From assembly GCA_002269645.1 (NCBI GenBank), contig NIVC01002510.1, positions 1 through 36,268 on the forward strand: a stretch of 36,268 nt of DNA, in the 5' to 3' direction. The position numbers and the translations under genes are program-made. Below are positions 611 to 34,763 of the stretch, piece after piece (position 1 is the first letter of the stretch; every line of letters begins with the position of its first letter). A model generated the notes under the pieces. The model did not search any database. It was not told the DNA's origin and saw only the letters and a program-made list of their open reading frames with translations. The DNA is from Macrostomum lignano. Lineage: Eukaryota.

Positions 611-796
611 ATGCAGAGACTAGCTTTCCTCTCTCTTCTGGTGTTGCTTCTTGCGTTTGCAGCATATTCAGCCAATGGACAAGGCTGTTACTGCTTGCAA
701 GAAGTCTGCTACATCAGCTATCCTGAATTATGTAATAGCGGTTTGGGTTGCGCTGGCGCAGGGGATTTTGTACCTTGCGAAGGATATGGCGGATAA
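611..796 (+). CDS. Secreted cysteine-rich peptide precursor, 61 aa (copy 1)
   Basis: ATG at 611 in context TTCAAATGC. MQRLAFLSLLVLLLAFAAYSANG is a classic signal peptide (basic n-region, Leu-rich h-region, A-N-G cleavage site). Mature part QGCYCLQEVCYISYPELCNSGLGCAGAGDFVPCEGYGG has 6 Cys. TATATAG lies 97 bp upstream and AATAAA ~105 bp downstream of the stop. The ORF-track start at 551 is a TTG and is not used. Confidence 0.85.
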   Translation: MQRLAFLSLLVLLLAFAAYSANGQGCYCLQEVCYISYPELCNSGLGCAGAGDFVPCEGYGG

Positions 797-899
797 ATCT
801 GTTTTAATTAAGGTAACGATGGAAGCATGACCGTCGATTGTCCTAGAATAGGAGGAGTGCGTTTTGACAACCTGCGATTCAGTTGATTCAAAACTGAAA

Positions 900-905
900 A
901 ATAAA
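900..905 (+). terminator. Polyadenylation signal AATAAA of the peptide gene (repeated in every unit)
   Basis: AATAAA ~105 nt after the stop codon, followed by a T-rich downstream tract (ttgtcttttttattatttcctttttggg, ~956-983). Confidence 0.6.
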
Positions 906-1063
906 CCGATTGAAAGGAAGTATGCGTTATTATTTCCGTTGAAGCTGTTCGTTCATTGTCTTTTTTATTATTTCCTTTTTGGGTATTAGATGAGTGTCGA
1001 ATGGCTCCAAACGACAGACAACAACAACAACAAAATACGCTGTCATGATGGTAAAAGTCAGCG

Positions 1064-4000
1064 TCACAGGGCGCGCTTCATGGCGTGGGCGCGAACAAAG
1101 GCCGCGCCACCGGCAGTGTCCGGGGCGCCGGCGTCAGCCAGCAGACAGTCGACATAACGCCGAGTTCGCGCTTGACCTCGCCGGTAGGGTGCCTGCAGCG
1201 TGAGCAGCAGCACCTCCTGCACCGGCTGTGGCAGTACGACTCGGCGCGGATGAGATGGCCTGCGAGCTGGAGTCGCCGACGGCGCAGTAGATCACTTGGA
1301 CGTGGCAGGCCAGCGCGGCGATAGAGTGCCGCGTTGGTGACTCGCTCGACGCCGATGTTGAAGCGCGCGCGCAGCAGACCAGCGTGCGCCGCATCGACTT
1401 GCTGTTCGAGTGAGTCCGTCAGCGTCCAGGTCTCGGCGTTGTACAGCAGGACGGTCTCGATTACCGCCTGGAACAGCGCCGCCCTCTGGCGGTCCGGTAG
1501 GGCCTCGACTGCAGGACTGCCCTCACAGAACGAAAGGCAGCCAGGCAAGCCCGCGGCGGCGTCGCAGGTCCTCGCGAGCGTCTGGAACCAGACCGCCGAG
1601 GTAGACGAACTGCTGACATCGCGGGAGTTCGGTCGCCTGCCCGTCAGCGCCTCGGCAAAATATTGCAGCCTCGATGTCGTCCGGCACGCAGAGCACAACG
1701 GTCTTCTGCGTGTTGACCACCAGGCCGACACTCGCCGCAACGGCAACCAGCCTGTCCAGCTGCCGTTGGGCGCCCTCGACGGTCGAGGACAGCAGGGCGA
1801 GGTCGTCGGCGTAGCCAAGCACGCTGAGCCGCTTCTCCGGTTGACGTCGACCCACGCGTCGCTGCAGCAGAAAACCGTCGTCGTCGGTAGGAAGAGCAGT
1901 CCGCAGCACCCAGTCAAGCACCAGGACGAACAGAAACGGCGCCAGCGTATCTCCCTGAAGCACTCCGGAGGATGTCTCAAAGGAGTCCGATAGGCCGTCC
2001 GGTGTTGTCACAGCAGCTGTCGTATCACGGTACATCGCCATGACGGCGCGGAGATCAGCTGCTCAGGCACGTTGTACGCGCGGAGCACCATTGGAAGCAC
2101 GGCTCTGACAACCGAGTCGAATGCCTTCTTGAAATCAATAAAGATTAAAATCAGTATCGACTGACGAATCCGCGCCTCCTCGATGACTCGGCGAAGAGCC
2201 AGGATCTGCGCCACTGTGCCGCGATGGGGCCGGAACCCGTTCTGCTCTGGGCGCAGGTACGGATCCAGCACGGGCTGCAACCGCGAAAGCAGCATCCGGT
2301 TGAACAGCTTCGCTGCACAGACTGAAGGCAGATGCCTCGATGGTCTTCAAGCCTAGTGGTGCCCGGCTTCTTTGGAACAGCGACGATGTGCGCCGTGGTC
2401 CATTCGTTGGGCGCCGCCTCACCGAAGAGCACGCGGTTCATCACTCTGGCGACCTCAGCGGCCACACAGGGGATGCGCAGCGCCTCGATGGGCACCTCGT
2501 CCGGACCCAGCGCTTTCCCGCCCGGTGACTGCTGGCGAGCTTGACAACGTCGGCTGCGTTGACTGGGGCTACGCTGAAACTCTCCTCTGCCGGCAGCGGC
2601 GTCTCCGGCGGCAGCGTCAGACTGTCTGGCAGCGGGGGTGGCGGCGCGTTGACGATGGCGGCGAAGAACTCGCGCAGCTCGTTCCTACGCTCGTCCGGCG
2701 TGTCACCAGCCAGGTTCAGCGGATTGCGCCGCTTTCGTCCCGTCAGAGCGTTGATGGCGGACCAGGCCACGCGCCCTCTGGCATCGGGCCCAGCGGCAGA
2801 GACAGCCTGAATGGCGTCATCGACAGCCGCTTGTTGGCGCTGCAGGTAGACAGCTGCCAGAGCTGCCTCTGCCTCGCGGGTTGGTCGCCTGCTCAAGCGG
2901 AGCTTCTCCAGATCTTCCCTCGCTGCCTGAATCGCGGGGTCGTCCTGCCAGACCGGCTGCCCACGTTGAGCCGGCTGCATCATCGGGACTGCTTGCTCCG
3001 CGGCGGTTCTGATTGCAGCGCACACTTCCGCATACTCGGCACTTCCACGCTTGTCGCCCAGCGCGTGTTAAAGGCGCTAGCAAAGCGACGCTGCGTATCG
3101 GTGGCTCTGAGCGCGCGGTAGTAGCGCCGCGGTGGCCGCTTCGCGGACGGTAGAGCGGATCGCGAAGGTTGAGGTCGCAGATGAGGAGCCGGTGATCGGA
3201 CCGCAGAGCCAGCGGCGTGATGGTGCGGCAGTTGACGGCGCGACGACGCTCACGGAAACGCACGAGCACGTGGTCGAGCTGTGCTTGTCTCCGGGTTGCG
3301 TTCCTGCCACGCGCGTTCCGTCGCCTCCGCTTGCAGCCCACGAAGGTTGCGAGACCGCTCAGTGGCTTGCGGAAGCGGGTGTTGGCCGACACCATGTCCT
3401 GCCTCTCCAGGAAGTCCTCTAGTGCCTCGGTGTTTGTTCCCGCGTGGCGTCACGAACAGCGACCTCTCGGACCTACGCAGGACTGCGTTCAGGTCTCGAG
3501 GGCGACCGCTGTGTCACGCTGCGCCGTCGCCTCTACCTGCACTGAGAGCTGCTCGAAAAACTCTTGAGCCTCGTCAGGGCGTGTGGCAGGGGGCGCGTAC
3601 GCGCAGAACAGGCGAGCATTCCGACCGCGTAGCCGGACGTCGATCCGAAGCAACCGGGGGACAGGGAGATGCAGCGACAGCTCTGCTGCAGCCTCGGCCC
3701 GATCAGCGCTCCAACTCCTCCACGGCCTCGCTGGTCCGCAGAAGTATAGTAGAGGGTCCACCCGGCGCCCAAGTCCTCACAATGAAGTCCCGGGTCGGCC
3801 TTGATAGACACCTCCTGCAGCGAGATGATGTCGCAGCTCAGGTCGTACGCCAGCTTCGCCAGCACCCCTCTACGCCAAGCAGCCTTGAGAGTGCGGCAGT
3901 TCAGCGTCCCGACCCGAAGCATGCCCTGTGGTACGGCTGGGGCTCGATGCAGTTGAGCCTCACGGTCCCCGGCGCCACCCGGAGGATCCGAGTGGACCCG

Positions 4001-4167
4001 CGCGGCAGCTCGACGGGCGGCGCCACGCAGCCGGCCTCGTCGGTTCCGCTCACGCCGGCGCTCAACACGCCGACGGGCGCTCCGCTGCCCTCGCTTGGTC
4101 CTGCCGCATTTGGCCGCCGCAGCAGTTAAGCGCGGCTCTCCGCTCTGACACGAGGAGGTAGCGGCAT
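1064..4167 (-). pseudogene. APE endonuclease-reverse transcriptase ORF of LINE copy 1, frameshifted in this sequence
   Basis: Pieces of the 1037-aa protein appear in several frames (GTLNCRT, LQEV, QLDHVLV/SDH, EQNGFR, IDFKKAFDSV, QGDTLAP, YADD). The breaks are small deletions mostly in runs or short repeats, so they may be sequencing errors and not real inactivation. Confidence 0.75.
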
Positions 4168-4193
4168 TTATCTGCACCGTGGTGCAAATAAAT
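4166..4193 (-). other. 12-bp stem / 4-nt loop hairpin abutting the LINE ATG (copy 1)
   Basis: + strand atttatctgcac-cgtg-gtgcaaataaat. 11/12 Watson-Crick pairs, and the mismatch is a G:U pair in the element's sense RNA. Confidence 0.75.
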
Positions 4194-4726
4194 TAAGACT
4201 GCAAATAAATTAAGACTGCAAATAAATTAAGACTGCAAATAAATTAAGACTGCAAATAAATTAAGACTGCAAATAAATTAAGACTGCAAATAAATTAAGA
4301 CTGCAAATAAATTAAGACTGCAAATAAATTAAGACTGCAAATAAATTAAGACTGCAAATAAATTAAGACTGCAAATAAATTAAGACTGCAAATAAATTAA
4401 GACTGCAAATAAATTAAGACTGCAAATAAATTAAGACTGCAAATAAATTAAGACTGCAAATAAATTAAGACTGCAAATAAATTAAGACTGCAAATAAATT
4501 AAGACTGCAAATAAATTAAGACTGCAAATAAATTAAGACTGCAAATAAATTAAGACTGCAAATAAATTAAGACTGCAAATAAATTAAGACTGCAAATAAA
4601 TTAAGACTGCAAATAAATTAAGACTGCAAATAAATTAAGACTGCAAATAAATTAAGACTGCAAATAAATTAAGACTGCAAATAAATTAAGACTGCAAATA
4701 AATTAAGACTGCAAATAAATTAAGAC
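4183..4726. repeat. Perfect minisatellite (TGCAAATAAATTAAGAC)x32 at the LINE 5' end (copy 1)
   Basis: 544 bp = 32 x 17, with no variant units seen. Confidence 0.97.
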
Positions 4727-5190
4727 AGAGAAAGAGAGCAAGAGAGAGCGAGAGAGAGAGAGAACCGGTTAATTGCATTGTTGCTATTTTAATCCCAACG
4801 AAAATGACAATATCATTGTCGGTGCGAAGTGCAGAGATGCCCAGAATCAACCCTATCAAGGCAACAACTAGAGTTGAACGTATATCCGACATAACGTAGA
4901 GGTCAGAATGCATCAGAAGCTTTGTTGAGCTAAAAGTAGCTCGCCTTGAGTAAGCACAGAAATATAAATAACAAAACCAACATAGATTGCTTTAATTAAA
5001 TCCAGTCAGCCAACGCGTTTGGTTTAGTCAGCGGCCATGTTCAGCGTCTGAGATATATTTTATTTTTCACGTATGCATCAAATTATATAAGAAAACGTTT
5101 CTGTACAGTCCAAAGGGGGGCAGATTGTCCAATTATGAAGTACATTGGATGGAAGTTTTAAACAGGCGGGCGCACTACAATGCTTCGTGC

Positions 5191-5720
5191 CTACACTAAG
5201 AATACCTTGAACAAATGACCCGCACCACTGTGAATAAGCTGGACATTGAGACTTGTTTTTTTATTCTTGATGTACATTGATTCCGGTATGCTAAGTCTGG
5301 ATGTTTTTATGAGTGGAGTTCAGAGCGGTAAGAAACCGTTCATGATACGAGTTCGCTTTGAAAATGGCAAAAGTGTCGTCAACATAGTGTTTGTAGAATC
5401 TAGGCGCACAATTTAGGGTGTCATCCACTGCTTCCCCCGCCGGTAGGGTGCTTGCAGCGTCAGCAGCAGCACCTCCTGCACCGGCTGTGGGCAGTACGAC
5501 TCGCTCGGGATAAAATATGGCCTGCCAGCTGGAGTCGCGACGGCACAACAGCTCGCTTGGACGGAGCAGGCCGGTGCAGCAATAGAGTGCCGCATTGGTG
5601 ACTCGCTCGTAACCGATCTTGAAGGCGGCGCGCAGCAGGCCAGCGTGCGCCGCATCGACCCTGCTGTTCGAGCGATTCCGTCAGCGTCCAGGTCTCGGCG
5701 TTCCTTAACAGCATCTCGAT
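5191..5720 (-). pseudogene. PLE + RTE composite relic (unit copy)
   Basis: Same sequence as 10009-10539, with small indels. Confidence 0.8.
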
Positions 5721-6726
5721 ATCCGTATGCTATCGGCCTGGGCTTAAAAAGCTTTGGCTTCAGCGTTATCATCCAGGGATAGTGCACGCGCGCAATTGCA
5801 CCTGCACCAGACAGCAGCCAGCACGTAATTACGGCCTCCCAAACCGAAAATGTGCACCAGCCCCAGGCTGGATAAACCAGAAACGGGATTGTCTGTGGAG
5901 AGGTGCTAAGCGTCATTCTTCGTCCACAGCTTAGCATCTCTTTTCTGGATTTACTCTCTTTAGCTTAATTATGCAAACCTAAAAATAAGCAAATGCCGCA
6001 CAGCCTACCGCTTTTCATTAAGCTGCAAGGCAGTGCTGTCTTGATGGTTTTGTCGGCCAGTCAAAGCAGCTTTTTATGTACACTTGTACACTACGTAGCT
6101 TGCGGTCAGTCATTTTACCGTCACCTCCCTGGGCTAGCTAATTAATGTTCAATATTCTCACCTTGCACCTTGCCTGTACCCATCTCCTATCGATAATAAA
6201 AAATGTTTTATCTGTCGCGCTGGATATTTTACCCCTAGCAAAGTCAATGATGCTCCGTCTTCAATCAATCTCCAATCTTAAATCTTCAATCTTCAACTCG
6301 TTTTCCTATCTCGCCGTGCCTAAATACTCTCGTATAGTATGCTATCGATGCTAAAGTGGTGATCAGCCAGACTCCACCTGCCAGTGTCAGTGGAATTTCT
6401 TAAACGCAACTCTGCATTCGGAATCGGCATTCTGCTAGTGCTCCTACCGTAGTGCTCTGCTGTTTACCTTTATCGCCTTCCTGTTCATTCAACATCGCTA
6501 ATTTCTAAAATCTTTCAGATTGTGTGTCCGACCAATAATCGCTACTAGGCGTGTGCGTGTGTATATGCAGTGTATACCAAATAAGGAGCTTTCGATAATA
6601 AAATCTGCTTATCGCATCCGGACTGATTTTCTATATAGCCTTGCATGGGCATTTGGCAGTATGCTGATTAACTCACTAAGAGACAGCAAGTTTTGTCCCT
6701 TTTTTATCGCAACAAGCGCCGTTCAA

Positions 6727-6912
6727 ATGCAGAGACTAGCTTTCCTCTCTCTTCTGGTGTTGCTTCTTGCGTTTGCAGCATATTCAGCCAATGGACAAGG
6801 CTGTTACTGCTTGCAAGAAGTCTGCTACATCAGCTATCCTGAATTATGTAATAGCGGTTTGGGTTGCGCTGGCGCAGGGGATTTTGTACCTTGCGAAGGA
6901 TATGGCGGATAA
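6727..6912 (+). CDS. Secreted cysteine-rich peptide precursor (copy 2)
   Basis: Same 61-aa translation as copy 1. Confidence 0.85.
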   Translation: MQRLAFLSLLVLLLAFAAYSANGQGCYCLQEVCYISYPELCNSGLGCAGAGDFVPCEGYGG

Positions 6913-7595
6913 ATCTGTTTTAATTAAGGTAACGATGGAAGCATGACCGTCGATTGTCCTAGAATAGGAGGAGTGCGTTTTGACAACCTGCGATTCAGTT
7001 GATTCAAAACTGAAAAATAAACCGATTGAAAGGAAGTATGCGTTATTATTTCCGTTGAAGCTGTTCGTTCATTGTCTTTTTTATTATTTCCTTTTTGGGT
7101 ATTAGATGAGTGTCGAATGGCTCAAACGACAGAGAAAGAGAGCAAGAGAGAGCGAGAGAGAGAGAGAACCGGTTAATTGCATTGTTGCTATTTTAATCCC
7201 AACGAAAATGACAATATCATTGTCGGTGCGAAGTGCAGAGATGCCCAGAATCAACCCTATCAAGGCAACAACTAGAGTTGAACGTATATCCGACATAACG
7301 TAGAGGTCAGAATGCATCAGAAGCTTTTGTTGAGCTAAAAAGTAGCTCGCTTGAGTAAGCACAGAAATATAAATAACAAAACCAACATAGATTGCTTTAA
7401 TTAAATCAGTCAGCCAACGCGTTTGGTTTAGTCAGCGGCCATGTTCAGCGTCTGAGATATATTTTATTTTTCACGTATGCATCAAATTATATAAGAAAAC
7501 GTTTCTGTACAGTCCAAAGGGGGGCAGATTGTCCAATTATGAAGGTACATTGGATGGAAGTTTTAAACAGGCGGGCGCACTACAATGCTTCGTGC

Positions 7596-8126
7596 CTACA
7601 CTAAGAATACCTTGAACAAATGACCCGCACCACTGTGAATAAGCTGGACATTGAGACTTGTTTTTTTATTCTTGATGTACATTGATTCCGGTATGCTAAG
7701 TCTGGATGTTTTTATGAGTGGAGTTCAGAGCGGTAAGAAACCGTTCATGATACGAGTTCGCTTTGAAAATGGCAAAAGTGTCGTCAACATAGTGTTTGTA
7801 GAATCTAGGCGCACAATTTAGGGTGTCATCCACTGCTTCCCCCGCCGGTAGGGTGCTTGCAGCGTCAGCAGCAGCACCTCCTGCACCGGCTGTGGGCAGT
7901 ACGACTCGGCTCGGATAAAATATGGCCTGCCAGCTGGAGTCGCCGACGGCACAACAGCTCGCTTGGACGGAGCAGGCCGGTGCAGCAATAGAGTGCCGCA
8001 TTGGTGACTCGCTCGTAACCGATCTTGAAGGCGGCGCGCAGCAGGCCAGCGTGCGCCGCATCGACCCTGCTGTTCGAGCGATTCCGTCAGCGTCCAGGTC
8101 TCGGCGTTCCTTAACAGCATCTCGAT
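7596..8126 (-). pseudogene. PLE + RTE composite relic (unit copy)
   Basis: Same sequence as 10009-10539. Confidence 0.8.
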
Positions 8127-9137
8127 ATCCGTATGCTATCGGCCTGGGCTTAAAAAGCTTTGGCTTCAGCGTTATCATCCAGGGATAGTGCACGCGCGCA
8201 ATTGCACCTGCACCAGACAGCAGCCAGCACGTAATTACGGCCTCCCAAACCGAAAATGTGCACCAGCCCCAGGCTGGATAAACCAGAAACGGGATTGTCT
8301 GTGGAGAGGTGCTAAGCGTCATTCTTGTCCACAGCTTAGCATCTCTTTTCTGGATTTACTCTCTTTAGCTTAATTATGCAAACCTAAAAATAAGCAAAAT
8401 GCCGCACAGCCTACCGCTTTTCATTAAGCTGCAAGGCAGTGCTGTCTTGATGGTTTTGTCGGCCAGTCAAAGCAGCTTTTTATGTACACTTGTACACTAC
8501 GTAGCTTGCGGTCAGTCATTTTACCGTCACCTCCCTGGGCTAGCTAATTAATGTTCAATATTCTCACCTTGCACCTTGCCTGTACCCATCTCCTATCGAT
8601 AATAAAAAATGTTTTATCTGTCGCGCTGGATATTTTACCCCTAGCAAAGTCAATGATGCTCCGTCTTCAATCAATCTCCAATCTTAAATCTTCAATCTTC
8701 AACTCGTTTTCCTATCTCGCCGTGCCTAAAATACTCTCGTATAGTATGCTATCGATGCTAAAGTGGTGATCAGCCAGACTCCACCTGCCAGTGTCAGTGG
8801 AAATTTCTTAACGCAACTCTGCATTCGGAATCGGCATTCTGCTAGTGCTCCTACCGTAGTGCTCTGCCTGTTTACCTTTATCGCCTTTCCTGTTCATTCA
8901 ACATCGCTAATTTCTAAAATCTTTCAGATTGTGTGTCCGACCAATAATCGCTACTAGGCGTGTGCGTGTGTATATGCAGTGTATACCAAATAAGGAGCTT
9001 TCCGATAATAAATCTGCTTATCGCATCCGGACTGATTTTCTATATAGCCTTGCATGGGCATTTGGCAGTATTGCTGATTGAAATCACTAAGAGACAGCAA
9101 GTTTTGTCCCTTTTTTATCGCAACAAGCGCCGTTCAA

Positions 9138-9323
9138 ATGCAGAGACTAGCTTTCCTCTCTCTTCTGGTGTTGCTTCTTGCGTTTGCAGCATATTCAGCC
9201 AATGGACAAGGCTGTTACTGCTTGCAAGAAGTCTGCTACATCAGCTATCCTGAATTATGTAATAGCGGTTTGGGTTGCGCTGGCGCAGGGGATTTTGTAC
9301 CTTGCGAAGGATATGGCGGATAA
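9138..9323 (+). CDS. Secreted cysteine-rich peptide precursor (copy 3)
   Basis: Same 61-aa translation as copy 1. Confidence 0.85.
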   Translation: MQRLAFLSLLVLLLAFAAYSANGQGCYCLQEVCYISYPELCNSGLGCAGAGDFVPCEGYGG

Positions 9324-9542
9324 ATCTGTTTTAATTAAGGTAACGATGGAAGCATGACCGTCGATTGTCCTAGAATAGGAGGAGTGCGTTTTGACAACCT
9401 GCGATTCAGTTGATTCAAAACTGAAAAATAAACCGATTGAAAGGAAGTATGCGTTATTATTTCCGTTGAAGCTGTTCGTTCATTGTCTTTTTTATTATTT
9501 CCTTTTTGGGTATTAGATGAGTGTCGAATGGCTCCAAACGAC

Positions 9543-9579
9543 AGAGAAAGAGAGCAAGAGAGAGCGAGAGAGAGAGAGA
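9543..9579. repeat. GA-rich microsatellite, one per unit; (GA)7 core, expanded to (GA)9 at ~24042-24059 and ~26460-26477
   Basis: agagaaagagagcaagagagagcgagagagagagaga begins at the LINE target site. Confidence 0.85.
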
Positions 9580-10008
9580 ACCGGTTAATTGCATTGTTGC
9601 TATTTTAATCCCAACGAAAATGACAATATCATTGTCGGTGCGAAGTGCAGAGATGCCCAGAATCAACCCTATCAAGGCAACAACTAGAGTTGAACGTATA
9701 TCCGACATAACGTAGAGGTCAGAATGCATCAGAAGCTTTTGTTGAGCTAAAAAGTAGCTCGCTTGAGTAAGCACAGAAATATAAATAACAAAACCAACAT
9801 AGATTGCTTTAATTAAATCAGTCAGCCAACGCGTTTGGTTTAGTCAGCGGCCATGTTCAGCGTCTGAGATATATTTTATTTTTCACGTATGCATCAAATT
9901 ATATAAGAAAACGTTTCTGTACAGTCCAAAGGGGGGGCAGATTGTCCAATTATGAAGGTACATTGGATGGAAGTTTTAAACAGGCGGGCGCACTACAATG
10001 CTTCGTGC

Positions 10009-10255
10009 CTACACTAAGAATACCTTGAACAAATGACCCGCACCACTGTGAATAAGCTGGACATTGAGACTTGTTTTTTTATTCTTGATGTACATTGATT
10101 CCGGTATGCTAAGTCTGGATGTTTTTATGAGTGGAGTTCAGAGCGGTAAGAAACCGTTCATGATACGAGTTCGCTTTGAAAATGGCAAAAGTGTCGTCAA
10201 CATAGTGTTTGTAGAATCTAGGCGCACAATTTAGGGTGTCATCCACTGCTTCCCC
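10009..10255 (-). pseudogene. Internally deleted Penelope-like element relic (RT YVDD segment joined to a GIY-YIG C-terminal segment); one per unit
   Basis: The - strand reads EAVDDTLNCAPRFYKHYVDDTFAIFKANSYHERFLTALNSTHKNI, resembling the PLE RT motif ..RYVDDxF....FLxxLNxxHxxIxFT. It is followed immediately, in another frame, by RLSIPESMYIKNKKTSLNVQLIHSGAGHLFKVFLV*, resembling the PLE C-terminal ..ESxYIKxxKPSLN.. motif. Family assignment is from motif recall. Confidence 0.7.
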
Positions 10256-10539
10256 CGCCGGTAGGGTGCTTGCAGCGTCAGCAGCAGCACCTCCTGCACC
10301 GGCTGTGGGCAGTACGACTCGGCTCGGATAAAATATGGCCTGCCAGCTGGAGTCGCCGACGGCACAACAGCTCGCTTGGACGGAGCAGGCCGGTGCAGCA
10401 ATAGAGTGCCGCATTGGTGACTCGCTCGTAACCGATCTTGAAGGCGGCGCGCAGCAGGCCAGCGTGCGCCGCATCGACCCTGCTGTTCGAGCGATTCCGT
10501 CAGCGTCCAGGTCTCGGCGTTCCTTAACAGCATCTCGAT
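10256..10539 (-). pseudogene. Degenerate internal fragment of a close relative of the RTE-like LINE (C-terminal coding region); one per unit
   Basis: Aligns by eye to ~29015-29300 of LINE copy 2 (NAETWTLTESLEQQ...RRRLQLAGH...ESYCPQPVQEVLLLTLQAPYRRG). Manual count gives ~26 substitutions and 2 small indels over ~265 bp. Confidence 0.9.
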
Positions 10540-11550
10540 ATCCGTATGCTATCGGCCTGGGCTTAAAAAGCTTTGGCTTCAGCGTTATCATCCAGGGATA
10601 GTGCACGCGCGCAATTGCACCTGCACCAGACAGCAGCCAGCACGTAATTACGGCCTCCCAAACCGAAAATGTGCACCAGCCCCAGGCTGGATAAACCAGA
10701 AACGGGATTGTCTGTGGAGAGGTGCTAAGCGTCATTCTTGTCCACAGCTTAGCATCTCTTTTCTGGATTTACTCTCTTTAGCTTAATTATGCAAACCTAA
10801 AAATAAGCAAAATGCCGCACAGCCTACCGCTTTTCATTAAGCTGCAAGGCAGTGCTGTCTTGATGGTTTTGTCGGCCAGTCAAAGCAGCTTTTTATGTAC
10901 ACTTGTACACTACGTAGCTTGCGGTCAGTCATTTTACCGTCACCTCCCTGGGCTAGCTAATTAATGTTCAATATTCTCACCTTGCACCTTGCCTGTACCC
11001 ATCTCCTATCGATAATAAAAAATGTTTTATCTGTCGCGCTGGATATTTTACCCCTAGCAAAGTCAATGATGCTCCGTCTTCAATCAATCTCCAATCTTAA
11101 ATCTTCAATCTTCAACTCGTTTTCCTATCTCGCCGTGCCTAAAATACTCTCGTATAGTATGCTATCGATGCTAAAGTGGTGATCAGCCAGACTCCACCTG
11201 CCAGTGTCAGTGGAAATTTCTTAACGCAACTCTGCATTCGGAATCGGCATTCTGCTAGTGCTCCTACCGTAGTGCTCTGCCTGTTTACCTTTATCGCCTT
11301 TCCTGTTCATTCAACATCGCTAATTTCTAAAATCTTTCAGATTGTGTGTCCGACCAATAATCGCTACTAGGCGTGTGCGTGTGTATATGCAGTGTATACC
11401 AAATAAGGAGCTTTCCGATAATAAATCTGCTTATCGCATCCGGACTGATTTTCTATATAGCCTTGCATGGGCATTTGGCAGTATTGCTGATTGAAATCAC
11501 TAAGAGACAGCAAGTTTTGTCCCTTTTTTATCGCAACAAGCGCCGTTCAA

Positions 11551-24488: not shown

Positions 24489-25019
24489 CTACACTAAGAA
24501 TACCTTGAACAAATGACCCGCACCACTGTGAATAAGCTGGACATTGAGACTTGTTTTTTTATTCTTGATGTACATTGATTCCGGTATGCTAAGTCTGGAT
24601 GTTTTTATGAGTGGAGTTCAGAGCGGTAAGAAACCGTTCATGATACGAGTTCGCTTTGAAAATGGCAAAAGTGTCGTCAACATAGTGTTTGTAGAATCTA
24701 GGCGCACAATTTAGGGTGTCATCCACTGCTTCCCCCGCCGGTAGGGTGCTTGCAGCGTCAGCAGCAGCACCTCCTGCACCGGCTGTGGGCAGTACGACTC
24801 GGCTCGGATAAAATATGGCCTGCCAGCTGGAGTCGCCGACGGCACAACAGCTCGCTTGGACGGAGCAGGCCGGTGCAGCAATAGAGTGCCGCATTGGTGA
24901 CTCGCTCGTAACCGATCTTGAAGGCGGCGCGCAGCAGGCCAGCGTGCGCCGCATCGACCCTGCTGTTCGAGCGATTCCGTCAGCGTCCAGGTCTCGGCGT
25001 TCCTTAACAGCATCTCGAT
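24489..25019 (-). pseudogene. PLE + RTE composite relic (unit copy)
   Basis: Same sequence as 10009-10539. Confidence 0.8.
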
Positions 25020-26030
25020 ATCCGTATGCTATCGGCCTGGGCTTAAAAAGCTTTGGCTTCAGCGTTATCATCCAGGGATAGTGCACGCGCGCAATTGCAC
25101 CTGCACCAGACAGCAGCCAGCACGTAATTACGGCCTCCCAAACCGAAAATGTGCACCAGCCCCAGGCTGGATAAACCAGAAACGGGATTGTCTGTGGAGA
25201 GGTGCTAAGCGTCATTCTTGTCCACAGCTTAGCATCTCTTTTCTGGATTTACTCTCTTTAGCTTAATTATGCAAACCTAAAAATAAGCAAAATGCCGCAC
25301 AGCCTACCGCTTTTCATTAAGCTGCAAGGCAGTGCTGTCTTGATGGTTTTGTCGGCCAGTCAAAGCAGCTTTTTATGTACACTTGTACACTACGTAGCTT
25401 GCGGTCAGTCATTTTACCGTCACCTCCCTGGGCTAGCTAATTAATGTTCAATATTCTCACCTTGCACCTTGCCTGTACCCATCTCCTATCGATAATAAAA
25501 AATGTTTTATCTGTCGCGCTGGATATTTTACCCCTAGCAAAGTCAATGATGCTCCGTCTTCAATCAATCTCCAATCTTAAATCTTCAATCTTCAACTCGT
25601 TTTCCTATCTCGCCGTGCCTAAAATACTCTCGTATAGTATGCTATCGATGCTAAAGTGGTGATCAGCCAGACTCCACCTGCCAGTGTCAGTGGAAATTTC
25701 TTAACGCAACTCTGCATTCGGAATCGGCATTCTGCTAGTGCTCCTACCGTAGTGCTCTGCCTGTTTACCTTTATCGCCTTTCCTGTTCATTCAACATCGC
25801 TAATTTCTAAAATCTTTCAGATTGTGTGTCCGACCAATAATCGCTACTAGGCGTGTGCGTGTGTATATGCAGTGTATACCAAATAAGGAGCTTTCCGATA
25901 ATAAATCTGCTTATCGCATCCGGACTGATTTTCTATATAGCCTTGCATGGGCATTTGGCAGTATTGCTGATTGAAATCACTAAGAGACAGCAAGTTTTGT
26001 CCCTTTTTTATCGCAACAAGCGCCGTTCAA

Positions 26031-26216
26031 ATGCAGAGACTAGCTTTCCTCTCTCTTCTGGTGTTGCTTCTTGCGTTTGCAGCATATTCAGCCAATGGAC
26101 AAGGCTGTTACTGCTTGCAAGAAGTCTGCTACATCAGCTATCCTGAATTATGTAATAGCGGTTTGGGTTGCGCTGGCGCAGGGGATTTTGTACCTTGCGA
26201 AGGATATGGCGGATAA
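26031..26216 (+). CDS. Secreted cysteine-rich peptide precursor (copy 10)
   Basis: Same 61-aa translation as copy 1. Confidence 0.85.
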   Translation: MQRLAFLSLLVLLLAFAAYSANGQGCYCLQEVCYISYPELCNSGLGCAGAGDFVPCEGYGG

Positions 26217-26905
26217 ATCTGTTTTAATTAAGGTAACGATGGAAGCATGACCGTCGATTGTCCTAGAATAGGAGGAGTGCGTTTTGACAACCTGCGATTC
26301 AGTTGATTCAAAACTGAAAAATAAACCGATTGAAAGGAAGTATGCGTTATTATTTCCGTTGAAGCTGTTCGTTCATTGTCTTTTTTATTATTTCCTTTTT
26401 GGGTATTAGATGAGTGTCGAATGGCTCCAAACGACAGAGAAAGAGAGCAAGAGAGAGCGAGAGAGAGAGAGAGAGAACCGGTTAATTGCATTGTTGCTAT
26501 TTTAATCCCAACGAAAATGACAATATCATTGTCGGTGCGAAGTGCAGAGATGCCCAGAATCAACCCTATCAAGGCAACAACTAGAGTTGAACGTATATCC
26601 GACATAACGTAGAGGTCAGAATGCATCAGAAGCTTTTGTTGAGCTAAAAAGTAGCTCGCTTGAGTAAGCACAGAAATATAAATAACAAAACCAACATAGA
26701 TTGCTTTAATTAAATCAGTCAGCCAACGCGTTTGGTTTAGTCAGCGGCCATGTTCAGCGTCTGAGATATATTTTATTTTTCACGTATGCATCAAATTATA
26801 TAAGAAAACGTTTCTGTACAGTCCAAAGGGGGGGCAGATTGTCCAATTATGAAGGTACATTGGATGGAAGTTTTAAACAGGCGGGCGCACTACAATGCTT
26901 CGTGC

Positions 26906-27436
26906 CTACACTAAGAATACCTTGAACAAATGACCCGCACCACTGTGAATAAGCTGGACATTGAGACTTGTTTTTTTATTCTTGATGTACATTGATTCCG
27001 GTATGCTAAGTCTGGATGTTTTTATGAGTGGAGTTCAGAGCGGTAAGAAACCGTTCATGATACGAGTTCGCTTTGAAAATGGCAAAAGTGTCGTCAACAT
27101 AGTGTTTGTAGAATCTAGGCGCACAATTTAGGGTGTCATCCACTGCTTCCCCCGCCGGTAGGGTGCTTGCAGCGTCAGCAGCAGCACCTCCTGCACCGGC
27201 TGTGGGCAGTACGACTCGGCTCGGATAAAATATGGCCTGCCAGCTGGAGTCGCCGACGGCACAACAGCTCGCTTGGACGGAGCAGGCCGGTGCAGCAATA
27301 GAGTGCCGCATTGGTGACTCGCTCGTAACCGATCTTGAAGGCGGCGCGCAGCAGGCCAGCGTGCGCCGCATCGACCCTGCTGTTCGAGCGATTCCGTCAG
27401 CGTCCAGGTCTCGGCGTTCCTTAACAGCATCTCGAT
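26906..27436 (-). pseudogene. PLE + RTE composite relic (unit copy)
   Basis: Same sequence as 10009-10539. Confidence 0.8.
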
Positions 27437-28447
27437 ATCCGTATGCTATCGGCCTGGGCTTAAAAAGCTTTGGCTTCAGCGTTATCATCCAGGGATAGTG
27501 CACGCGCGCAATTGCACCTGCACCAGACAGCAGCCAGCACGTAATTACGGCCTCCCAAACCGAAAATGTGCACCAGCCCCAGGCTGGATAAACCAGAAAC
27601 GGGATTGTCTGTGGAGAGGTGCTAAGCGTCATTCTTGTCCACAGCTTAGCATCTCTTTTCTGGATTTACTCTCTTTAGCTTAATTATGCAAACCTAAAAA
27701 TAAGCAAAATGCCGCACAGCCTACCGCTTTTCATTAAGCTGCAAGGCAGTGCTGTCTTGATGGTTTTGTCGGCCAGTCAAAGCAGCTTTTTATGTACACT
27801 TGTACACTACGTAGCTTGCGGTCAGTCATTTTACCGTCACCTCCCTGGGCTAGCTAATTAATGTTCAATATTCTCACCTTGCACCTTGCCTGTACCCATC
27901 TCCTATCGATAATAAAAAATGTTTTATCTGTCGCGCTGGATATTTTACCCCTAGCAAAGTCAATGATGCTCCGTCTTCAATCAATCTCCAATCTTAAATC
28001 TTCAATCTTCAACTCGTTTTCCTATCTCGCCGTGCCTAAAATACTCTCGTATAGTATGCTATCGATGCTAAAGTGGTGATCAGCCAGACTCCACCTGCCA
28101 GTGTCAGTGGAAATTTCTTAACGCAACTCTGCATTCGGAATCGGCATTCTGCTAGTGCTCCTACCGTAGTGCTCTGCCTGTTTACCTTTATCGCCTTTCC
28201 TGTTCATTCAACATCGCTAATTTCTAAAATCTTTCAGATTGTGTGTCCGACCAATAATCGCTACTAGGCGTGTGCGTGTGTATATGCAGTGTATACCAAA
28301 TAAGGAGCTTTCCGATAATAAATCTGCTTATCGCATCCGGACTGATTTTCTATATAGCCTTGCATGGGCATTTGGCAGTATTGCTGATTGAAATCACTAA
28401 GAGACAGCAAGTTTTGTCCCTTTTTTATCGCAACAAGCGCCGTTCAA

Positions 28448-28633
28448 ATGCAGAGACTAGCTTTCCTCTCTCTTCTGGTGTTGCTTCTTGCGTTTGCAGC
28501 ATATTCAGCCAATGGACAAGGCTGTTACTGCTTGCAAGAAGTCTGCTACATCAGCTATCCTGAATTATGTAATAGCGGTTTGGGTTGCGCTGGCGCAGGG
28601 GATTTTGTACCTTGCGAAGGATATGGCGGATAA
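28448..28633 (+). CDS. Secreted cysteine-rich peptide precursor (copy 11)
   Basis: Same 61-aa translation as copy 1; lies immediately upstream of LINE copy 2. Confidence 0.85.
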   Translation: MQRLAFLSLLVLLLAFAAYSANGQGCYCLQEVCYISYPELCNSGLGCAGAGDFVPCEGYGG

Positions 28634-28900
28634 ATCTGTTTTAATTAAGGTAACGATGGAAGCATGACCGTCGATTGTCCTAGAATAGGAGGAGTGCGTT
28701 TTGACAACCTGCGATTCAGTTGATTCAAAACTGAAAAATAAACCGATTGAAAGGAAGTATGCGTTATTATTTCCGTTGAAGCTGTTCGTTCATTGTCTTT
28801 TTTATTATTTCCTTTTTGGGTATTAGATGAGTGTCGAATGGCTCCAAACGACAGACAACAACAACAACAAAATACGCTGTCATGATGGTAAAAGTCAGCG

Positions 28901-31900
28901 TCACAGGGCGCGCTTCATGGCGTGGGCGCGAACAAAGGCCGCGCCACCGGCAGTGTCCGGGGCGCCGGCGTCAGCCAGCAGACAGTCGACATAACGCCGA
29001 GTTCGCGCTTGACCTCGCCGGTAGGGTGCCTGCAGCGTGAGCAGCAGCACCTCCTGCACCGGCTGTGGGCAGTACGACTCGGCGCGGATGAGATGGCCTG
29101 CGAGCTGGAGTCGCCGACGGCGCAGTAGATCACTTGGACGTGGCAGGCCAGCGCGGCGATAGAGTGCCGCGTTGGTGACTCGCTCGACGCCGATGTTGAA
29201 GGCGGCGCGCAGCAGACCAGCGTGCGCCGCATCGACTTGCTGTTCGAGTGAGTCCGTCAGCGTCCAGGTCTCGGCGTTGTACAGCAGGACGGTCTCGATT
29301 ACCGCCTGGAACAGCGCCGCCCTCTGGCGGTCCGGTAGGGCCTCGGACTGCAGGACTGCCCTCACAGAACGAAAGGCAGCCCAGGCAAGCCCGCGGCGGC
29401 GTCGCAGGTCCTCGCGAGCGTCTGGAACCAGACCGCCGAGGTAGACGAACTGCTGACATCGCGGGAGTTCGGTCGCCTGCCCGTCAGCGCCTCGGCAAAA
29501 TATTGCAGCCTCGATGTCGTCCGGCACGCAGAGCACAACGGTCTTCTGCGTGTTGACCACCAGGCCGACACTCGCCGCAACGGCAACCAGCCTGTCCAGC
29601 TGCCGTTGGGCGCCCTCGACGGTCGAGGACAGCAGGGCGAGGTCGTCGGCGTAGCCAAGCACGCTGAGCCGCTTCTCCGGTTGACGTCGACCCACGCGTC
29701 GCTGCAGCAGAAAACCGTCGTCGTCGGTAGGAAGAGCAGTCCGCAGCACCCAGTCAAGCACCAGGACGAACAGAAACGGCGCCAGCGTATCTCCCTGAAG
29801 CACTCCGGAGGATGTCTCAAAGGAGTCCGATAGGCCGTCCGGTGTTGTCACAGCAGCTGTCGTATCACGGTACATCGCCATGACGGCGGAGATCAGCTGC
29901 TCAGGCACGTTGTACGCGCGGAGCACCATTGGAAGCACGGCTCTGACAACCGAGTCGAATGCCTTCTTGAAATCAATAAAGATTAAAATCAGTATCGACT
30001 GACGAATCCGCGCCTCCTCGATGACTCGGCGAAGAGCCAGGATCTGCGCCACTGTGCCGCGATGGGGCCGGAACCCGTTCTGCTCTGGGCGCAGGTACGG
30101 ATCCAGCACGGGCTGCAACCGCGAAAGCAGCATCCGGTTGAACAGCTTCGCTGCACAGGACTGAAGGCAGATGCCTCGATGGTCTTCAAGCCTAGTGGTG
30201 CCCGGCTTCTTTGGAACAGCGACGATGTGCGCCGTGGTCCATTCGTTGGGCGCCGCCTCACCGAAGAGCACGCGGTTCATCACTCTGGCGACCTCAGCGG
30301 CCACACAGGGGATGCGCAGCGCCTCGATGGGCACCTCGTCCGGACCCAGCGCTTTCCCGCCCGGTGACTGCTGGGCGAGCTTGACAACGTCGGCTGCGTT
30401 GACTGGGGCTACGCTGAAACTCTCCTCTGCCGGCAGCGGCGTCTCCGGCGGCAGCGTCAGACTGTCTGGCAGCGGGGGTGGCGGCGCGTTGACGATGGCG
30501 GCGAAGAACTCGCGCAGCTCGTTCCTACGCTCGTCCGGCGTGTCACCAGCCAGGTTCAGCGGATTGCGCCGCTTTCGTCCCGTCAGAGCGTTGATGGCGG
30601 ACCAGGCCACGCGCCCTCTGGCATCGGGCCCAGCGGCAGAGACAGCCTGAATGGCGTCATCGACAGCCGCTTGTTGGCGCTGCAGGTAGACAGCTGCCAG
30701 AGCTGCCTCTGCCTCGCGGGTTGGTCGCCTGCTCAAGCGGAGCTTCTCCAGATCTTCCCTCGCTGCCTGAATCGCGGGGTCGTCCTGCCAGACCGGCTGC
30801 CCACGTTGAGCCGGCTGCATCATCGGGACTGCTTGCTCCGCGGCGGTTCTGATTGCAGCGCACACTTCCGCATACTCGGCACTTCCACGCTTGTCGCCCA
30901 GCGCGGTGTTAAAGGCGCTAGCAAAGCGACGCTGCGTATCGGTGGCTCTGAGCGCGCGGTAGTAGCGCCGCGGTGGCCGCTTCGGCGGACGGTAGAGCGG
31001 ATCGCGAAGGTTGAGGTCGCAGATGAGGAGCCGGTGATCGGACCGCAGAGCCAGCGGCGTGATGGTGCGGCAGTTGACGGCGCGACGACGCTCACGGAAA
31101 CGCACGAGCACGTGGTCGAGCTGTGCTTGTCTCCGGGTTGCGTTCCTGCCACGCGCGTTCCGTCGCCTCCGCTTGCAGCCCACGAAGGTTGCGAGACCGC
31201 TCAGTGGCTTGCGGAAGCGGGTGTTGGCCGACACCATGTCCTGCCTCTCCAGGAAGTCCTCTAGTGCCTCGGTGTTGTTGTTCCCGCGTGGCGTCACGAA
31301 CAGCGACCTCTCGGACCTACGCAGGACTGCGTTCAGGTCTCCGAGGGCGACCGCTGTGTCACGCTGCGCCGTCGCCTCTACCTGCACTGAGAGCTGCTCG
31401 AAAAACTCTTGAGCCTCGTCAGGGCGTGTGGCAGGGGGCGCGTACGCGCAGAACAGGCGAGCATTCCGACCGCGTAGCCGGACGTCGATCCGAAGCAACC
31501 GGGGGGACAGGGAGATGCAGCGACAGCTCTGCTGCAGCCTCGGCCCGATCAGCGCTCCAACTCCTCCACGGCCTCGCTGGTCCGCAGAAGTATAGTAGAG
31601 GGTCCACCCGGCGCCCAAGTCCTCACAATGAAGTCCCGGGTCGGCCTTGATAGACACCTCCTGCAGCGAGATGATGTCGCAGCTCAGGTCGTACGCCAGC
31701 TTCGCCAGCACCCCTCTACGCCAAGCAGCCTTGAGAGTGCGGCAGTTCAGCGTCCCGACCCGAAGCATGCCCTGTGGTACGGCTGGGGCTCGATGCAGTT
31801 GAGCCTCACGGTCCCCGGCGCCACCCGGAGGATCCGAGTGGACCCGCGCGGCAGCTCGACGGGCGGCGCCACGCAGCCGGCCTCGTCGGTTCCGCTCACG

Positions 31901-32014
31901 CCGGCGCTCAACACGCCGACGGGCGCTCCGCTGCCCTCGCTTGGTCCTGCCGCATTTGGCCGCCGCAGCAGTTAAGCGCGGCTCTCCGCTCTGACCACGA
32001 GGAGGTAGCGGCAT
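28901..32014 (-). CDS. LINE polyprotein, 1037 aa: Arg-rich N-terminus, APE (exo/endo/phos) endonuclease, reverse transcriptase
   Basis: ATG at 32014. APE motifs GTLNCRT, DIISLQEV, YAP, LGDLNA, QLDHVLV, SDH. RT motifs HRGICL, EQNGFR, FIDFKKAFDSV, GVLQGDTLAPFLF, YADD, VNTQKT, YLG. The C-terminal RRRLQLAGH is RTE-like. No CCHC finger or RNase H seen. Confidence 0.95.
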   Translation of the reverse strand: MPLPPRGQSGEPRLTAAAAKCGRTKRGQRSARRRVERRRERNRRGRLRGAARRAAARVHSDPPGGAGDREAQLHRAPAVPQGMLRVGTLNCRTLKAAWRRGVLAKLAYDLSCDIISLQEVSIKADPGLHCEDLGAGWTLYYTSADQRGRGGVGALIGPRLQQSCRCISLSPRLLRIDVRLRGRNARLFCAYAPPATRPDEAQEFFEQLSVQVEATAQRDTAVALGDLNAVLRRSERSLFVTPRGNNNTEALEDFLERQDMVSANTRFRKPLSGLATFVGCKRRRRNARGRNATRRQAQLDHVLVRFRERRRAVNCRTITPLALRSDHRLLICDLNLRDPLYRPPKRPPRRYYRALRATDTQRRFASAFNTALGDKRGSAEYAEVCAAIRTAAEQAVPMMQPAQRGQPVWQDDPAIQAAREDLEKLRLSRRPTREAEAALAAVYLQRQQAAVDDAIQAVSAAGPDARGRVAWSAINALTGRKRRNPLNLAGDTPDERRNELREFFAAIVNAPPPPLPDSLTLPPETPLPAEESFSVAPVNAADVVKLAQQSPGGKALGPDEVPIEALRIPCVAAEVARVMNRVLFGEAAPNEWTTAHIVAVPKKPGTTRLEDHRGICLQSCAAKLFNRMLLSRLQPVLDPYLRPEQNGFRPHRGTVAQILALRRVIEEARIRQSILILIFIDFKKAFDSVVRAVLPMVLRAYNVPEQLISAVMAMYRDTTAAVTTPDGLSDSFETSSGVLQGDTLAPFLFVLVLDWVLRTALPTDDDGFLLQRRVGRRQPEKRLSVLGYADDLALLSSTVEGAQRQLDRLVAVAASVGLVVNTQKTVVLCVPDDIEAAIFCRGADGQATELPRCQQFVYLGGLVPDAREDLRRRRGLAWAAFRSVRAVLQSEALPDRQRAALFQAVIETVLLYNAETWTLTDSLEQQVDAAHAGLLRAAFNIGVERVTNAALYRRAGLPRPSDLLRRRRLQLAGHLIRAESYCPQPVQEVLLLTLQAPYRRGQARTRRYVDCLLADAGAPDTAGGAAFVRAHAMKRAL

Positions 32015-32040
32015 TTATCTGCACCGTGGTGCAAATAAAT
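32013..32040 (-). other. 12-bp stem / 4-nt loop hairpin abutting the LINE ATG (copy 2)
   Basis: Arms at 32013-32024 and 32029-32040; the ATG occupies 32014-32012. Confidence 0.75.
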
Positions 32041-32573
32041 TAAGACTGCAAATAAATTAAGACTGCAAATAAATTAAGACTGCAAATAAATTAAGACTGC
32101 AAATAAATTAAGACTGCAAATAAATTAAGACTGCAAATAAATTAAGACTGCAAATAAATTAAGACTGCAAATAAATTAAGACTGCAAATAAATTAAGACT
32201 GCAAATAAATTAAGACTGCAAATAAATTAAGACTGCAAATAAATTAAGACTGCAAATAAATTAAGACTGCAAATAAATTAAGACTGCAAATAAATTAAGA
32301 CTGCAAATAAATTAAGACTGCAAATAAATTAAGACTGCAAATAAATTAAGACTGCAAATAAATTAAGACTGCAAATAAATTAAGACTGCAAATAAATTAA
32401 GACTGCAAATAAATTAAGACTGCAAATAAATTAAGACTGCAAATAAATTAAGACTGCAAATAAATTAAGACTGCAAATAAATTAAGACTGCAAATAAATT
32501 AAGACTGCAAATAAATTAAGACTGCAAATAAATTAAGACTGCAAATAAATTAAGACTGCAAATAAATTAAGAC
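32030..32573. repeat. Perfect minisatellite (TGCAAATAAATTAAGAC)x32 at the LINE 5' end (copy 2)
   Basis: 544 bp = 32 x 17, the same count as copy 1. Confidence 0.97.
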
Positions 32574-33038
32574 AGAGAAAGAGAGCAAGAGAGAGCGAGA
32601 GAGAGAGAGAACCGGTTAATTGCATTGTTGCTATTTTAATCCCAACGAAAATGACAATATCATTGTCGGTGCGAAGTGCAGAGATGCCCAGAATCAACCC
32701 TATCAAGGCAACAACTAGAGTTGAACGTATATCCGACATAACGTAGAGGTCAGAATGCATCAGAAGCTTTTGTTGAGCTAAAAAGTAGCTCGCTTGAGTA
32801 AGCACAGAAATATAAATAACAAAACCAACATAGATTGCTTTAATTAAATCAGTCAGCCAACGCGTTTGGTTTAGTCAGCGGCCATGTTCAGCGTCTGAGA
32901 TATATTTTATTTTTCACGTATGCATCAAATTATATAAGAAAACGTTTCTGTACAGTCCAAAGGGGGGCAGATTGTCCAATTATGAAGGTACATTGGATGG
33001 AAGTTTTAAACAGGCGGGCGCACTACAATGCTTCGTGC

Positions 33039-33568
33039 CTACACTAAGAATACCTTGAACAAATGACCCGCACCACTGTGAATAAGCTGGACATTGAGAC
33101 TTGTTTTTTTATTCTTGATGTACATTGATTCCGGTATGCTAAGTCTGGATGTTTTTATGAGTGGAGTTCAGAGCGGTAAGAAACCGTTCATGATACGAGT
33201 TCGCTTTGAAAATGGCAAAAGTGTCGTCAACATAGTGTTTGTAGAATCTAGGCGCACAATTTAGGGTGTCATCCACTGCTTCCCCGCCGGTAGGGTGCTT
33301 GCAGCGTCAGCAGCAGCACCTCCTGCACCGGCTGTGGGCAGTACGACTCGGCTCGGATAAAATATGGCCTGCCAGCTGGAGTCGCCGACGGCACAACAGC
33401 TCGCTTGGACGGAGCAGGCCGGTGCAGCAATAGAGTGCCGCATTGGTGACTCGCTCGTAACCGATCTTGAAGGCGGCGCGCAGCAGGCCAGCGTGCGCCG
33501 CATCGACCCTGCTGTTCGAGCGATTCCGTCAGCGTCCAGGTCTCGGCGTTCCTTAACAGCATCTCGAT
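33039..33568 (-). pseudogene. PLE + RTE composite relic (unit copy)
   Basis: Same as 10009-10539 with the 4-C junction. Confidence 0.8.
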
Positions 33569-34577
33569 ATCCGTATGCTATCGGCCTGGGCTTAAAAGCT
33601 TTGGCTTCAGCGTTATCATCCAGGGATAGTGCACGCGCGCAATTGCACCTGCACCAGACAGCAGCCAGCACGTAATTACGGCCTCCCAAACCGAAAATGT
33701 GCACCAGCCCCAGGCTGGATAAACCAGAAACGGGATTGTCTGTGGAGAGGTGCTAAGCGTCATTCTTGTCCACAGCTTAGCATCTCTTTTCTGGATTTAC
33801 TCTCTTTAGCTTAATTATGCAAACCTAAAAATAAGCAAAATGCCGCACAGCCTACCGCTTTTCATTAAGCTGCAAGGCAGTGCTGTCTTGATGGTTTTGT
33901 CGGCCAGTCAAAGCAGCTTTTTATGTACACTTGTACACTACGTAGCTTGCGGTCAGTCATTTTACCGTCACCTCCCTGGGCTAGCTAATTAATGTTCAAT
34001 ATTCTCACCTTGCACCTTGCCTGTACCCATCTCCTATCGATAAAAAAAATGTTTTATCTGTCGCGCTGGATATTTTACCCCTAGCAAAGTCAATGATGCT
34101 CCGTCTTCAATCAATCTCCAATCTTAAATCTTCAATCTTCAACTCGTTTTCCTATCTCGCCGTGCCTAAAATACTCTCGTATAGTATGCTATCGATGCTA
34201 AAGTGGTGATCAGCCAGACTCCACCTGCCAGTGTCAGTGGAAATTTCTTAACGCAACTCTGCATTCGGAATCGGCATTCTGCTAGTGCTCCTACCGTAGT
34301 GCTCTGCCTGTTTACCTTTATCGCCTTTCCTGTTCATTCAACATCGCTAATTTCTAAAATCTTTCAGATTGTGTGTCCGACCAATAATCGCTACTAGGCG
34401 TGTGCGTGTGTATATGCAGTGTATACCAAATAAGGAGCTTTCCGATAATAAATCTGCTTATCGCATCCGGACTGATTTTCTATATAGCCTTGCATGGGCA
34501 TTTGGCAGTATTGCTGATTGAAATCACTAAGAGACAGCAAGTTTTGTCCCTTTTTTATCGCAACAAGCGCCGTTCAA

Positions 34578-34763
34578 ATGCAGAGACTAGCTTTCCTCTC
34601 TCTTCTGGTGTTGCTTCTTGCGTTTGCAGCATATTCAGCCAATGGACAAGGCTGTTACTGCTTGCAAGAAGTCTGCTACATCAGCTATCCTGAATTATGT
34701 AATAGCGGTTTGGGTTGCGCTGGCGCAGGGGATTTTGTACCTTGCGAAGGATATGGCGGATAA
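34578..34763 (+). CDS. Secreted cysteine-rich peptide precursor (copy 12)
   Basis: Same 61-aa translation as copy 1. Confidence 0.85.
   Translation: MQRLAFLSLLVLLLAFAAYSANGQGCYCLQEVCYISYPELCNSGLGCAGAGDFVPCEGYGG

Follow-up and report, generated by a model that had tools for sequence, protein, structure and literature searches.

Fish antifreeze-protein arrays and histone repeats share an architecture in which head-to-tail units of a few kilobases each carry a complete small gene and are very highly identical to one another. In Nematostella vectensis, the Nv1 cluster encodes a single secreted, Cys-rich peptide in at least 11 tandem genes that are nearly identical; their similarity has been attributed to concerted evolution or to recent tandem duplication with replication slippage, and the high copy number, which differs among populations, is tied to high output (PMC9842752). 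We describe here an array of this already known type from Macrostomum lignano. It occupies positions 1 to 36,268 of the forward strand of contig NIVC01002510.1 (GenBank assembly GCA_002269645.1), a stretch of 36,268 nucleotides (nt) referred to below as the window. Its repeated candidate gene, a 61-residue open reading frame (ORF), is an orphan, and the array carries a long interspersed nuclear element (LINE) as a passenger. The explanation we prefer, with confidence only slightly better than even, is a real amplification, recent or still turning over, of a 2.41-kb genomic piece containing an orphan gene for a secreted peptide.

Like the antifreeze and histone arrays, the window is built of few-kb units, each with a small candidate gene and with high identity between units. 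Antifreeze and histone genes, however, are conserved and expressed, whereas the window ORF is an orphan in a unit that is mostly non-coding and contains transposon debris. Judged by organization, no documented system comes closer than the Nv1 cluster. Both are head-to-tail sets of near-identical copies, and in the window the near-identity reaches the non-coding parts. Unlike in Nv1, the whole intergenic sequence is also identical, and a LINE lies in two of the units. The two peptides have no sequence relationship, and Nv1 alone of the two has documented expression, function and copy-number variation. An earlier, sequence-only reading of this DNA had started from the premise that toxin clusters normally diverge between copies, to which the nearly identical Nv1 genes are a counter-example (PMC9842752).

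The entire window is a head-to-tail repeat. Leaving aside two inserts of 3.7 kb each, it amounts to about 11.95 equivalents of a unit 2411-2417 bp long, and the repeat is far beyond chance. A BLAST comparison of one unit with the window places the first window nucleotide at unit position 1803 and the last at about 1693; the array accordingly extends beyond both window edges, as the sequence-only reading had stated. That reading had also claimed at least 12 identical gene copies in tandem, and the 186-nt ORF indeed occurs 12 times with no nucleotide difference and one uniform 61-residue translation. Its assignment of a 2.41-kb length to every unit needs amendment. The ORFs start 2411-2417 bp apart with two exceptions, spacings of 6116 and 6130 bp, which correspond to units 1 and 11; each of these is lengthened to 6.1 kb by a 3.7-kb retrotransposon that interrupts it at unit position 408. 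Among the nine complete plain units only seven alignment columns vary, each through an indel in a run of C, G or GA. Identity of approximately 100% spans the whole 2.4-kb unit, non-coding DNA and transposon debris included, rather than the coding sequence (CDS) alone. Feature coordinates are collected in Table 1, where the unit of CDS copy 3 (9138-11550) serves as the reference unit.

Every unit surrounds the ORF with the same set of candidate expression signals. TATATAG lies 97 nt, and GGCAGTAT, which includes an initiator (Inr)-like CAGT, 74 nt upstream of the ATG, at offsets constant in 12 of 12 units; AATAAA begins 103 nt past the stop codon, again in all 12, and T/GT-rich sequence comes after it. 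Around the ATG the sequence is CAAATGC throughout (12/12), with A at -3, and all but one of the 12 putative 5' untranslated regions (UTRs) are free of an upstream ATG. Elsewhere on the plus strand of the unit, TATAWAW occurs at only two other places and AATAAA at two others. The elements of the compact cassette described in the sequence-only reading (TATA, Inr-like CAGT, 186-nt CDS, AATAAA, T-rich tract) are thus present at fixed offsets in each of the 12 units.

The translation of every copy is MQRLAFLSLLVLLLAFAAYSANGQGCYCLQEVCYISYPELCNSGLGCAGAGDFVPCEGYGG. Its N-terminus resembles a signal peptide, with Met-Gln-Arg followed by an uncharged hydrophobic run and the small residues A21-N22-G23; by the -3/-1 rule, a signal peptide of about 23 residues with cleavage after Gly23 is most likely. 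The predicted mature peptide would then be 38 residues long, with six Cys, eight Gly, four Tyr, no Lys, Arg or His, and a net charge of -4. It begins with Gln, ends with Gly, and has the Cys pattern CxC-x4-C-x7-C-x5-C-x8-C.

A different explanation of these features is neutral, satellite-like amplification by unequal crossing-over, in which the 61-residue ORF is a chance occurrence, either non-functional or young and de novo without function. We consider this possible, if doubtful. It accounts for an identity that covers the whole unit and not the ORF alone, and it has no difficulty with LINE debris inside the unit. ORF length by itself means little, because the unit contains six ATG-initiated ORFs of at least 55 codons where shuffling leads one to expect 3.4. 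Less easily explained by neutral amplification are the TATA, Inr-like and AATAAA motifs, whose order and distances relative to the ORF are those plausible for a gene; as noted, two of these signals are sparse elsewhere on the same strand. The combination of a signal-like N-terminus with at least six Cys is also rare: an ORF of this kind arises in 0.05-0.1% of dinucleotide-preserving shuffles of the unit under strict thresholds and in at most 1.8% under loose ones, with the qualification that the thresholds were set after the ORF had been seen. The secretory, Cys-rich character of the ORF thus appears to be moderately beyond what chance would produce.

Several further observations join that qualification in weighing against a functional secreted-peptide gene. 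The hydrophobic N-terminal run is partly encoded by a CT-rich tract, which is able to yield Leu/Phe-rich stretches by chance. Since the entire unit is identical, identical translations are uninformative about selection on the peptide, and polishing with multi-mapped reads may have inflated the homogeneity. The window, which is array from end to end, contains no diverged copy that would allow constraint to be gauged. Homologues of the peptide were found neither in a word-index search of 5.8 billion clustered proteins nor in an exhaustive phmmer search of 1.84 billion representatives (0 matches). Metagenome contigs, scanned by protein pattern and by exact DNA, contained none, nor did viral contigs; PDB gave nothing at E <= 10, and the only Pfam match was sub-threshold, from the signal peptide to DIM (E = 0.07). 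With no homologue in any library searched, gene status cannot be supported by conservation. AlphaFold, run on the single sequence, predicts a helix over residues 3-21 with mean pLDDT (predicted local distance difference test) values of 83 and 73 in the first two ten-residue blocks; overall pLDDT is 63.8 and only the signal helix is confident, so the model offers too little certainty to support a fold search. An exact look-up of the peptide also found it absent from the public collections searched. By these searches the peptide is an orphan, outside the known Cys-rich families (defensins, knottins, EGF-like and others) represented in Pfam and PDB. Taking both sides together, we judge that the ORF is somewhat more probably an expressed secreted-peptide gene than not.

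Evidence of another kind comes from the inserts in units 1 and 11, on which the sequence-only reading of the array had been silent. Both are 3.7 kb long with 65% G+C, and both lie antisense to the ORF, 222 bp past its stop codon and about 115 bp past AATAAA. Each is a non-long-terminal-repeat (non-LTR) retrotransposon, and the two agree in site, orientation, target-site duplication, number of 17-mers at the 5' end (32) and (TTG)n tail. Over 3.7 kb they show 14 gap openings (16 gapped bases) and no substitution scored by BLAST; 13 of the 14 gaps are bases absent from copy 1, nearly all single nucleotides in short G/C runs, and the frameshifts in copy 1 are therefore probably errors of the consensus rather than decay of the element. 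The two copies lie 27,837 bp, or 10 units, apart. Because they agree down to repeat numbers, we read them as a single insertion copied by array turnover. The shared LINE, most simply explained in this way, is direct though circumstantial evidence for turnover inside the array, and it fits the description in the sequence-only reading of a recent or actively homogenized amplification.

Members of the RTE clade have a single ORF of about 1000 residues that joins an apurinic-type endonuclease, at the N-terminus, to a reverse transcriptase (RT). They lack ORF1, have a very short 3' UTR, end in a microsatellite 3' tail and make a short target-site duplication. The window LINE, about 3.7 kb long, shares the single ORF (1037 residues, endonuclease plus RT), the very short 3' UTR, a (TTG)n tail in place of poly(A), and the short target-site duplication. 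Upstream of its ORF there are only 17-mers and a hairpin, and no ORF1. Where it departs from RTE is this 5' end, in which 32 17-mers are followed by a hairpin ending at the start codon, a layout common to its relatives. The closest PDB structures to the ORF are the R2 and LINE-1 ORF2p reverse transcriptases (E ~1e-18 to 1e-20), a result that points to non-LTR RTs in general; the element appears RTE-like by its architecture.

Relatives of the LINE with 53-79% identity were found in Macrostomum lignano (UniRef), a Tara Oceans marine metagenome, metagenomes of the Joint Genome Institute (JGI) and one Logan run, the closest named ones being from Macrostomum lignano. Going by these LINE relatives, a flatworm or some other marine invertebrate would be the probable host. 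The exact LINE ORF was absent from the public collections searched, and a search of the literature on Macrostomum repeats and LINEs found nothing usable. Seven relatives, L001-L007, were located on contigs of 3-5 kb (marine and other metagenomes, one Logan run). Two kinds of 3' tail occur, (TTG)n in the window LINE and in L001, L002, L003 and L007, and an (ATT)n-like repeat in L004-L006. The sequences that flank L002, L003 and L007 on the 3' side resemble neither one another nor the window target.

These flanks bear on a further alternative, that the LINE is site-specific in the manner of R1 and R2, and inserted twice independently beside the (GA)n run, with the array serving as a safe haven. 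R1 and R2 in ribosomal DNA (rDNA) likewise occupy the same position in a minority of the units of a homogenized array. Consistent with such targeting, both copies are full-length and at least one is intact; they share an identical unit position, orientation and target-site duplication, and about 700 bp from this site each unit contains an older, related fragment that is oriented alike. However, whereas R1 and R2 are site-specific, the relatives of the window LINE lie in different, unrelated 3' flanks; its endonuclease is of the apurinic (APE) type and not the restriction-like type of R2, and the array around it is made of a putative protein gene instead of rDNA. Only 2 of 12 units are occupied, the equal 17-mer and TTG counts of the two copies are what a duplicated insertion predicts, and array turnover is in any case already required for the identity of the units. 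Independent site-specific insertions are therefore not favoured over one copied insertion, and we rate them as very unlikely. Less likely still is the most elaborate combination, an array under dosage selection whose orphan gene, possibly of de novo origin, encodes an anionic peptide with six Cys, together with an active RTE-like LINE that has specialized on one downstream site as a safe haven.

The copy number or the perfect identity of the units could also be a product of long-read assembly and polishing, the true copies being fewer or diverged. BLAST comparisons across the array give 46 gap openings against 6 mismatches, nearly all differences being 1-nt indels, and the differences cluster within 6.7 kb of the window start and within 1.7 kb of its end. 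Real neutral divergence consists mostly of substitutions, so this pattern is that of an incompletely polished long-read consensus; the window may be an entire short contig, with ends that are poorly covered and of lower consensus quality. LINE copy 1, whose only lesions are small indels, points the same way when set beside the intact copy 2, and multi-mapping reads are able to erase real variants. Assemblers, however, tend to collapse tandem repeats and seldom expand them. The two inserts, separated by 27,837 bp, and the differing unit lengths (2411-2417 bp, with GAGA added in two adjacent units) would be hard to make without multi-unit reads; the contig thus has landmarks, and long reads probably did span the array. 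We regard an artefact of this kind as unlikely. Private variants common to the two insert-bearing units, sought as a sign of a higher-order repeat, were limited to homopolymer-length variants, which are uninformative.

What can be observed directly is the array, the identity of its copies, the motifs of the cassette, and the LINE with its target-site duplication. Under the explanation that we prefer, amplification of a secreted-peptide gene, a single-copy locus containing a small gene without introns, along with remnants of old transposons, would have been amplified head to tail. Each copy would be transcribed from the putative TATA/Inr promoter to the AATAAA site into a messenger RNA of about 380 nt encoding a 61-residue pre-peptide, and removal of the signal peptide, presumably at the predicted site, would release a secreted 38-residue, six-Cys peptide. 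Recent duplication together with unequal crossing-over or replication slippage would have made the copies identical or kept them so. The RTE-like LINE would have inserted once, antisense and outside the cassette, and the occupied unit would later have been copied within the array. Many identical cassettes might then raise the output of one disulfide-rich secreted peptide, and dosage selection favouring bulk secretion may reasonably be supposed. The interpretation offered by the sequence-only reading is thereby supported in part, as regards the homogeneous tandem array and its gene-like cassettes.

If the cassette is expressed, the array would be another case of a lineage-restricted secreted peptide mass-produced from many identical genes. 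It would also supply, from a poorly annotated animal lineage, a 38-residue candidate with three possible disulfides for a gland, adhesive, eggshell, defence or reproductive secretion, and the LINE insertion would be a built-in marker for timing array turnover. If the cassette is not expressed, the array adds a further satellite, with a 2.4-kb unit, and cautions against reading selection from identical ORFs in repeats.

Table 1. Coordinates of array features in the window. Copy numbers of coding sequences are also unit numbers.
Feature	Position	Strand	Basis or remarks
Tandem array	1..36268	+	BLAST of one unit against the window; CDS copy search
CDS copy 1 (61 aa)	611..796	+	Unit 1 (611-6726), holds LINE copy 1
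CDS copy 2	6727..6912	+	Exact ORF copy
CDS copy 3	9138..9323	+	Exact ORF copy; reference unit 9138-11550
CDS copy 4	11551..11736	+	Exact ORF copy
CDS copy 5	13964..14149	+	Exact ORF copy
CDS copy 6	16376..16561	+	Exact ORF copy
CDS copy 7	18788..18973	+	Exact ORF copy
CDS copy 8	21201..21386	+	Exact ORF copy
CDS copy 9	23614..23799	+	Exact ORF copy; unit 9 with extra GAGA
CDS copy 10	26031..26216	+	Exact ORF copy; unit 10 with extra GAGA
CDS copy 11	28448..28633	+	Unit 11 (28448-34577), holds LINE copy 2
CDS copy 12	34578..34763	+	Exact ORF copy; unit truncated by window end
Putative core promoter, reference unit	9041..9071	+	TATATAG at 9041, GGCAGTAT (Inr-like CAGT) at 9064
AATAAA (putative poly(A) signal), reference unit	9427..9432	+	Same offset in 12/12 units
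(GA)n run, imperfect, directly 3' of the LINE insertion site	9546..9581	+	Length differs among units
Old related-LINE fragment, 285 bp, every unit	10249..10533 (unit positions 1112-1396)	-	BLAST
LINE copy 1	1019..4726	-	BLAST against copy 2; ORF broken by small indels
5' 17-mer array, LINE copy 1	4183-4726	-	Same array as copy 2
3' tail (TTG)n, LINE copy 1	1019-1035	-	Same tail as copy 2
Target-site duplication, LINE copy 1	1013-1018 and 4724-4729	.	
LINE copy 2, full-length non-LTR retrotransposon	28856..32573	-	BLAST, ORF, Pfam
Intact 1037-aa ORF of LINE copy 2	28901..32014	-	Exo_endo_phos aa 88-305, RVT_1 aa 601-860 (Pfam); YADD motif
5' end of LINE copy 2, 32 x 17-mer (TGCAAATAAATTAAGAC on + strand)	32030..32573	-	
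3' tail (TTG)n on element strand, LINE copy 2	28856..28872	-	
Target-site duplication, 3-6 bp (AGA up to GACAGA), LINE copy 2	28850..28855 and 32571-32576	.	

An array of structured-RNA genes (rDNA, 5S, small nuclear RNA, spliced-leader RNA or transfer RNA) was considered and excluded: Rfam gave no match for the whole window at gathering thresholds and none for one unit at E <= 1, and ARAGORN found no transfer RNA. The other ORFs of the unit matched no Pfam family. An argument for purifying selection from the variant-free CDS of the end units was dropped, because the stretch without variants takes in the 3' UTR as well and the counts are low.

Several minor features of the unit were recorded. 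A (TCAATCT)4.6 minisatellite occurs once per unit, about 470 bp upstream of each ATG (for example 143-174 and 8671-8702). The GA run is longer by GAGA in the adjacent units 9 and 10 (24019-24059 and 26436-26476), beside the LINE target site. This expansion and a C-run indel in units 5 and 6 are the sole variants common to neighbouring interior units, and the former may be the mark of a recent two-unit duplication.

The older LINE fragment found in every unit matches the 3' portion of the intact insert's coding sequence (residues 909-1002) at 88-89% DNA identity and lies in the same orientation as the inserts. Because this decayed fragment lies within it, the unit reads as ordinary genomic DNA, a gene plus transposon debris, and not as an ancient satellite. 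Adjoining it in every unit, a stretch at 10109-10250 on the minus strand translates to ...FYKHYVDDTFAIFK...FLTALNSTHKNIQ. With its YVDD motif it looks like the remnant of another reverse transcriptase, although Pfam gave no match.

The 5' end of the LINE family has a characteristic layout, in which tandem 17-mers precede a hairpin of about 10 bp whose 3' arm enters the start codon of the ORF. It is seen at 32576->31990 (minus strand) and 4729->4140 in the window, at 1-160 in L004, 1-150 in L006, 180-215 in L007 and 1-60 in L001. The 17-mer is a repeat of the hairpin 5' arm; against the 32 copies in the window LINE there are at least 8 of related sequence in L004 and at least 7 in L006. RNAalifold, applied to five elements, gave a 10-pair stem with compensatory changes at two pairs. 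Every 17-mer includes AATAAA when read in the direction of the peptide gene, so that in units 1 and 11 the cassette has 32 such poly(A)-signal hexamers downstream of it (4183-4726 and 32030-32573, plus strand).

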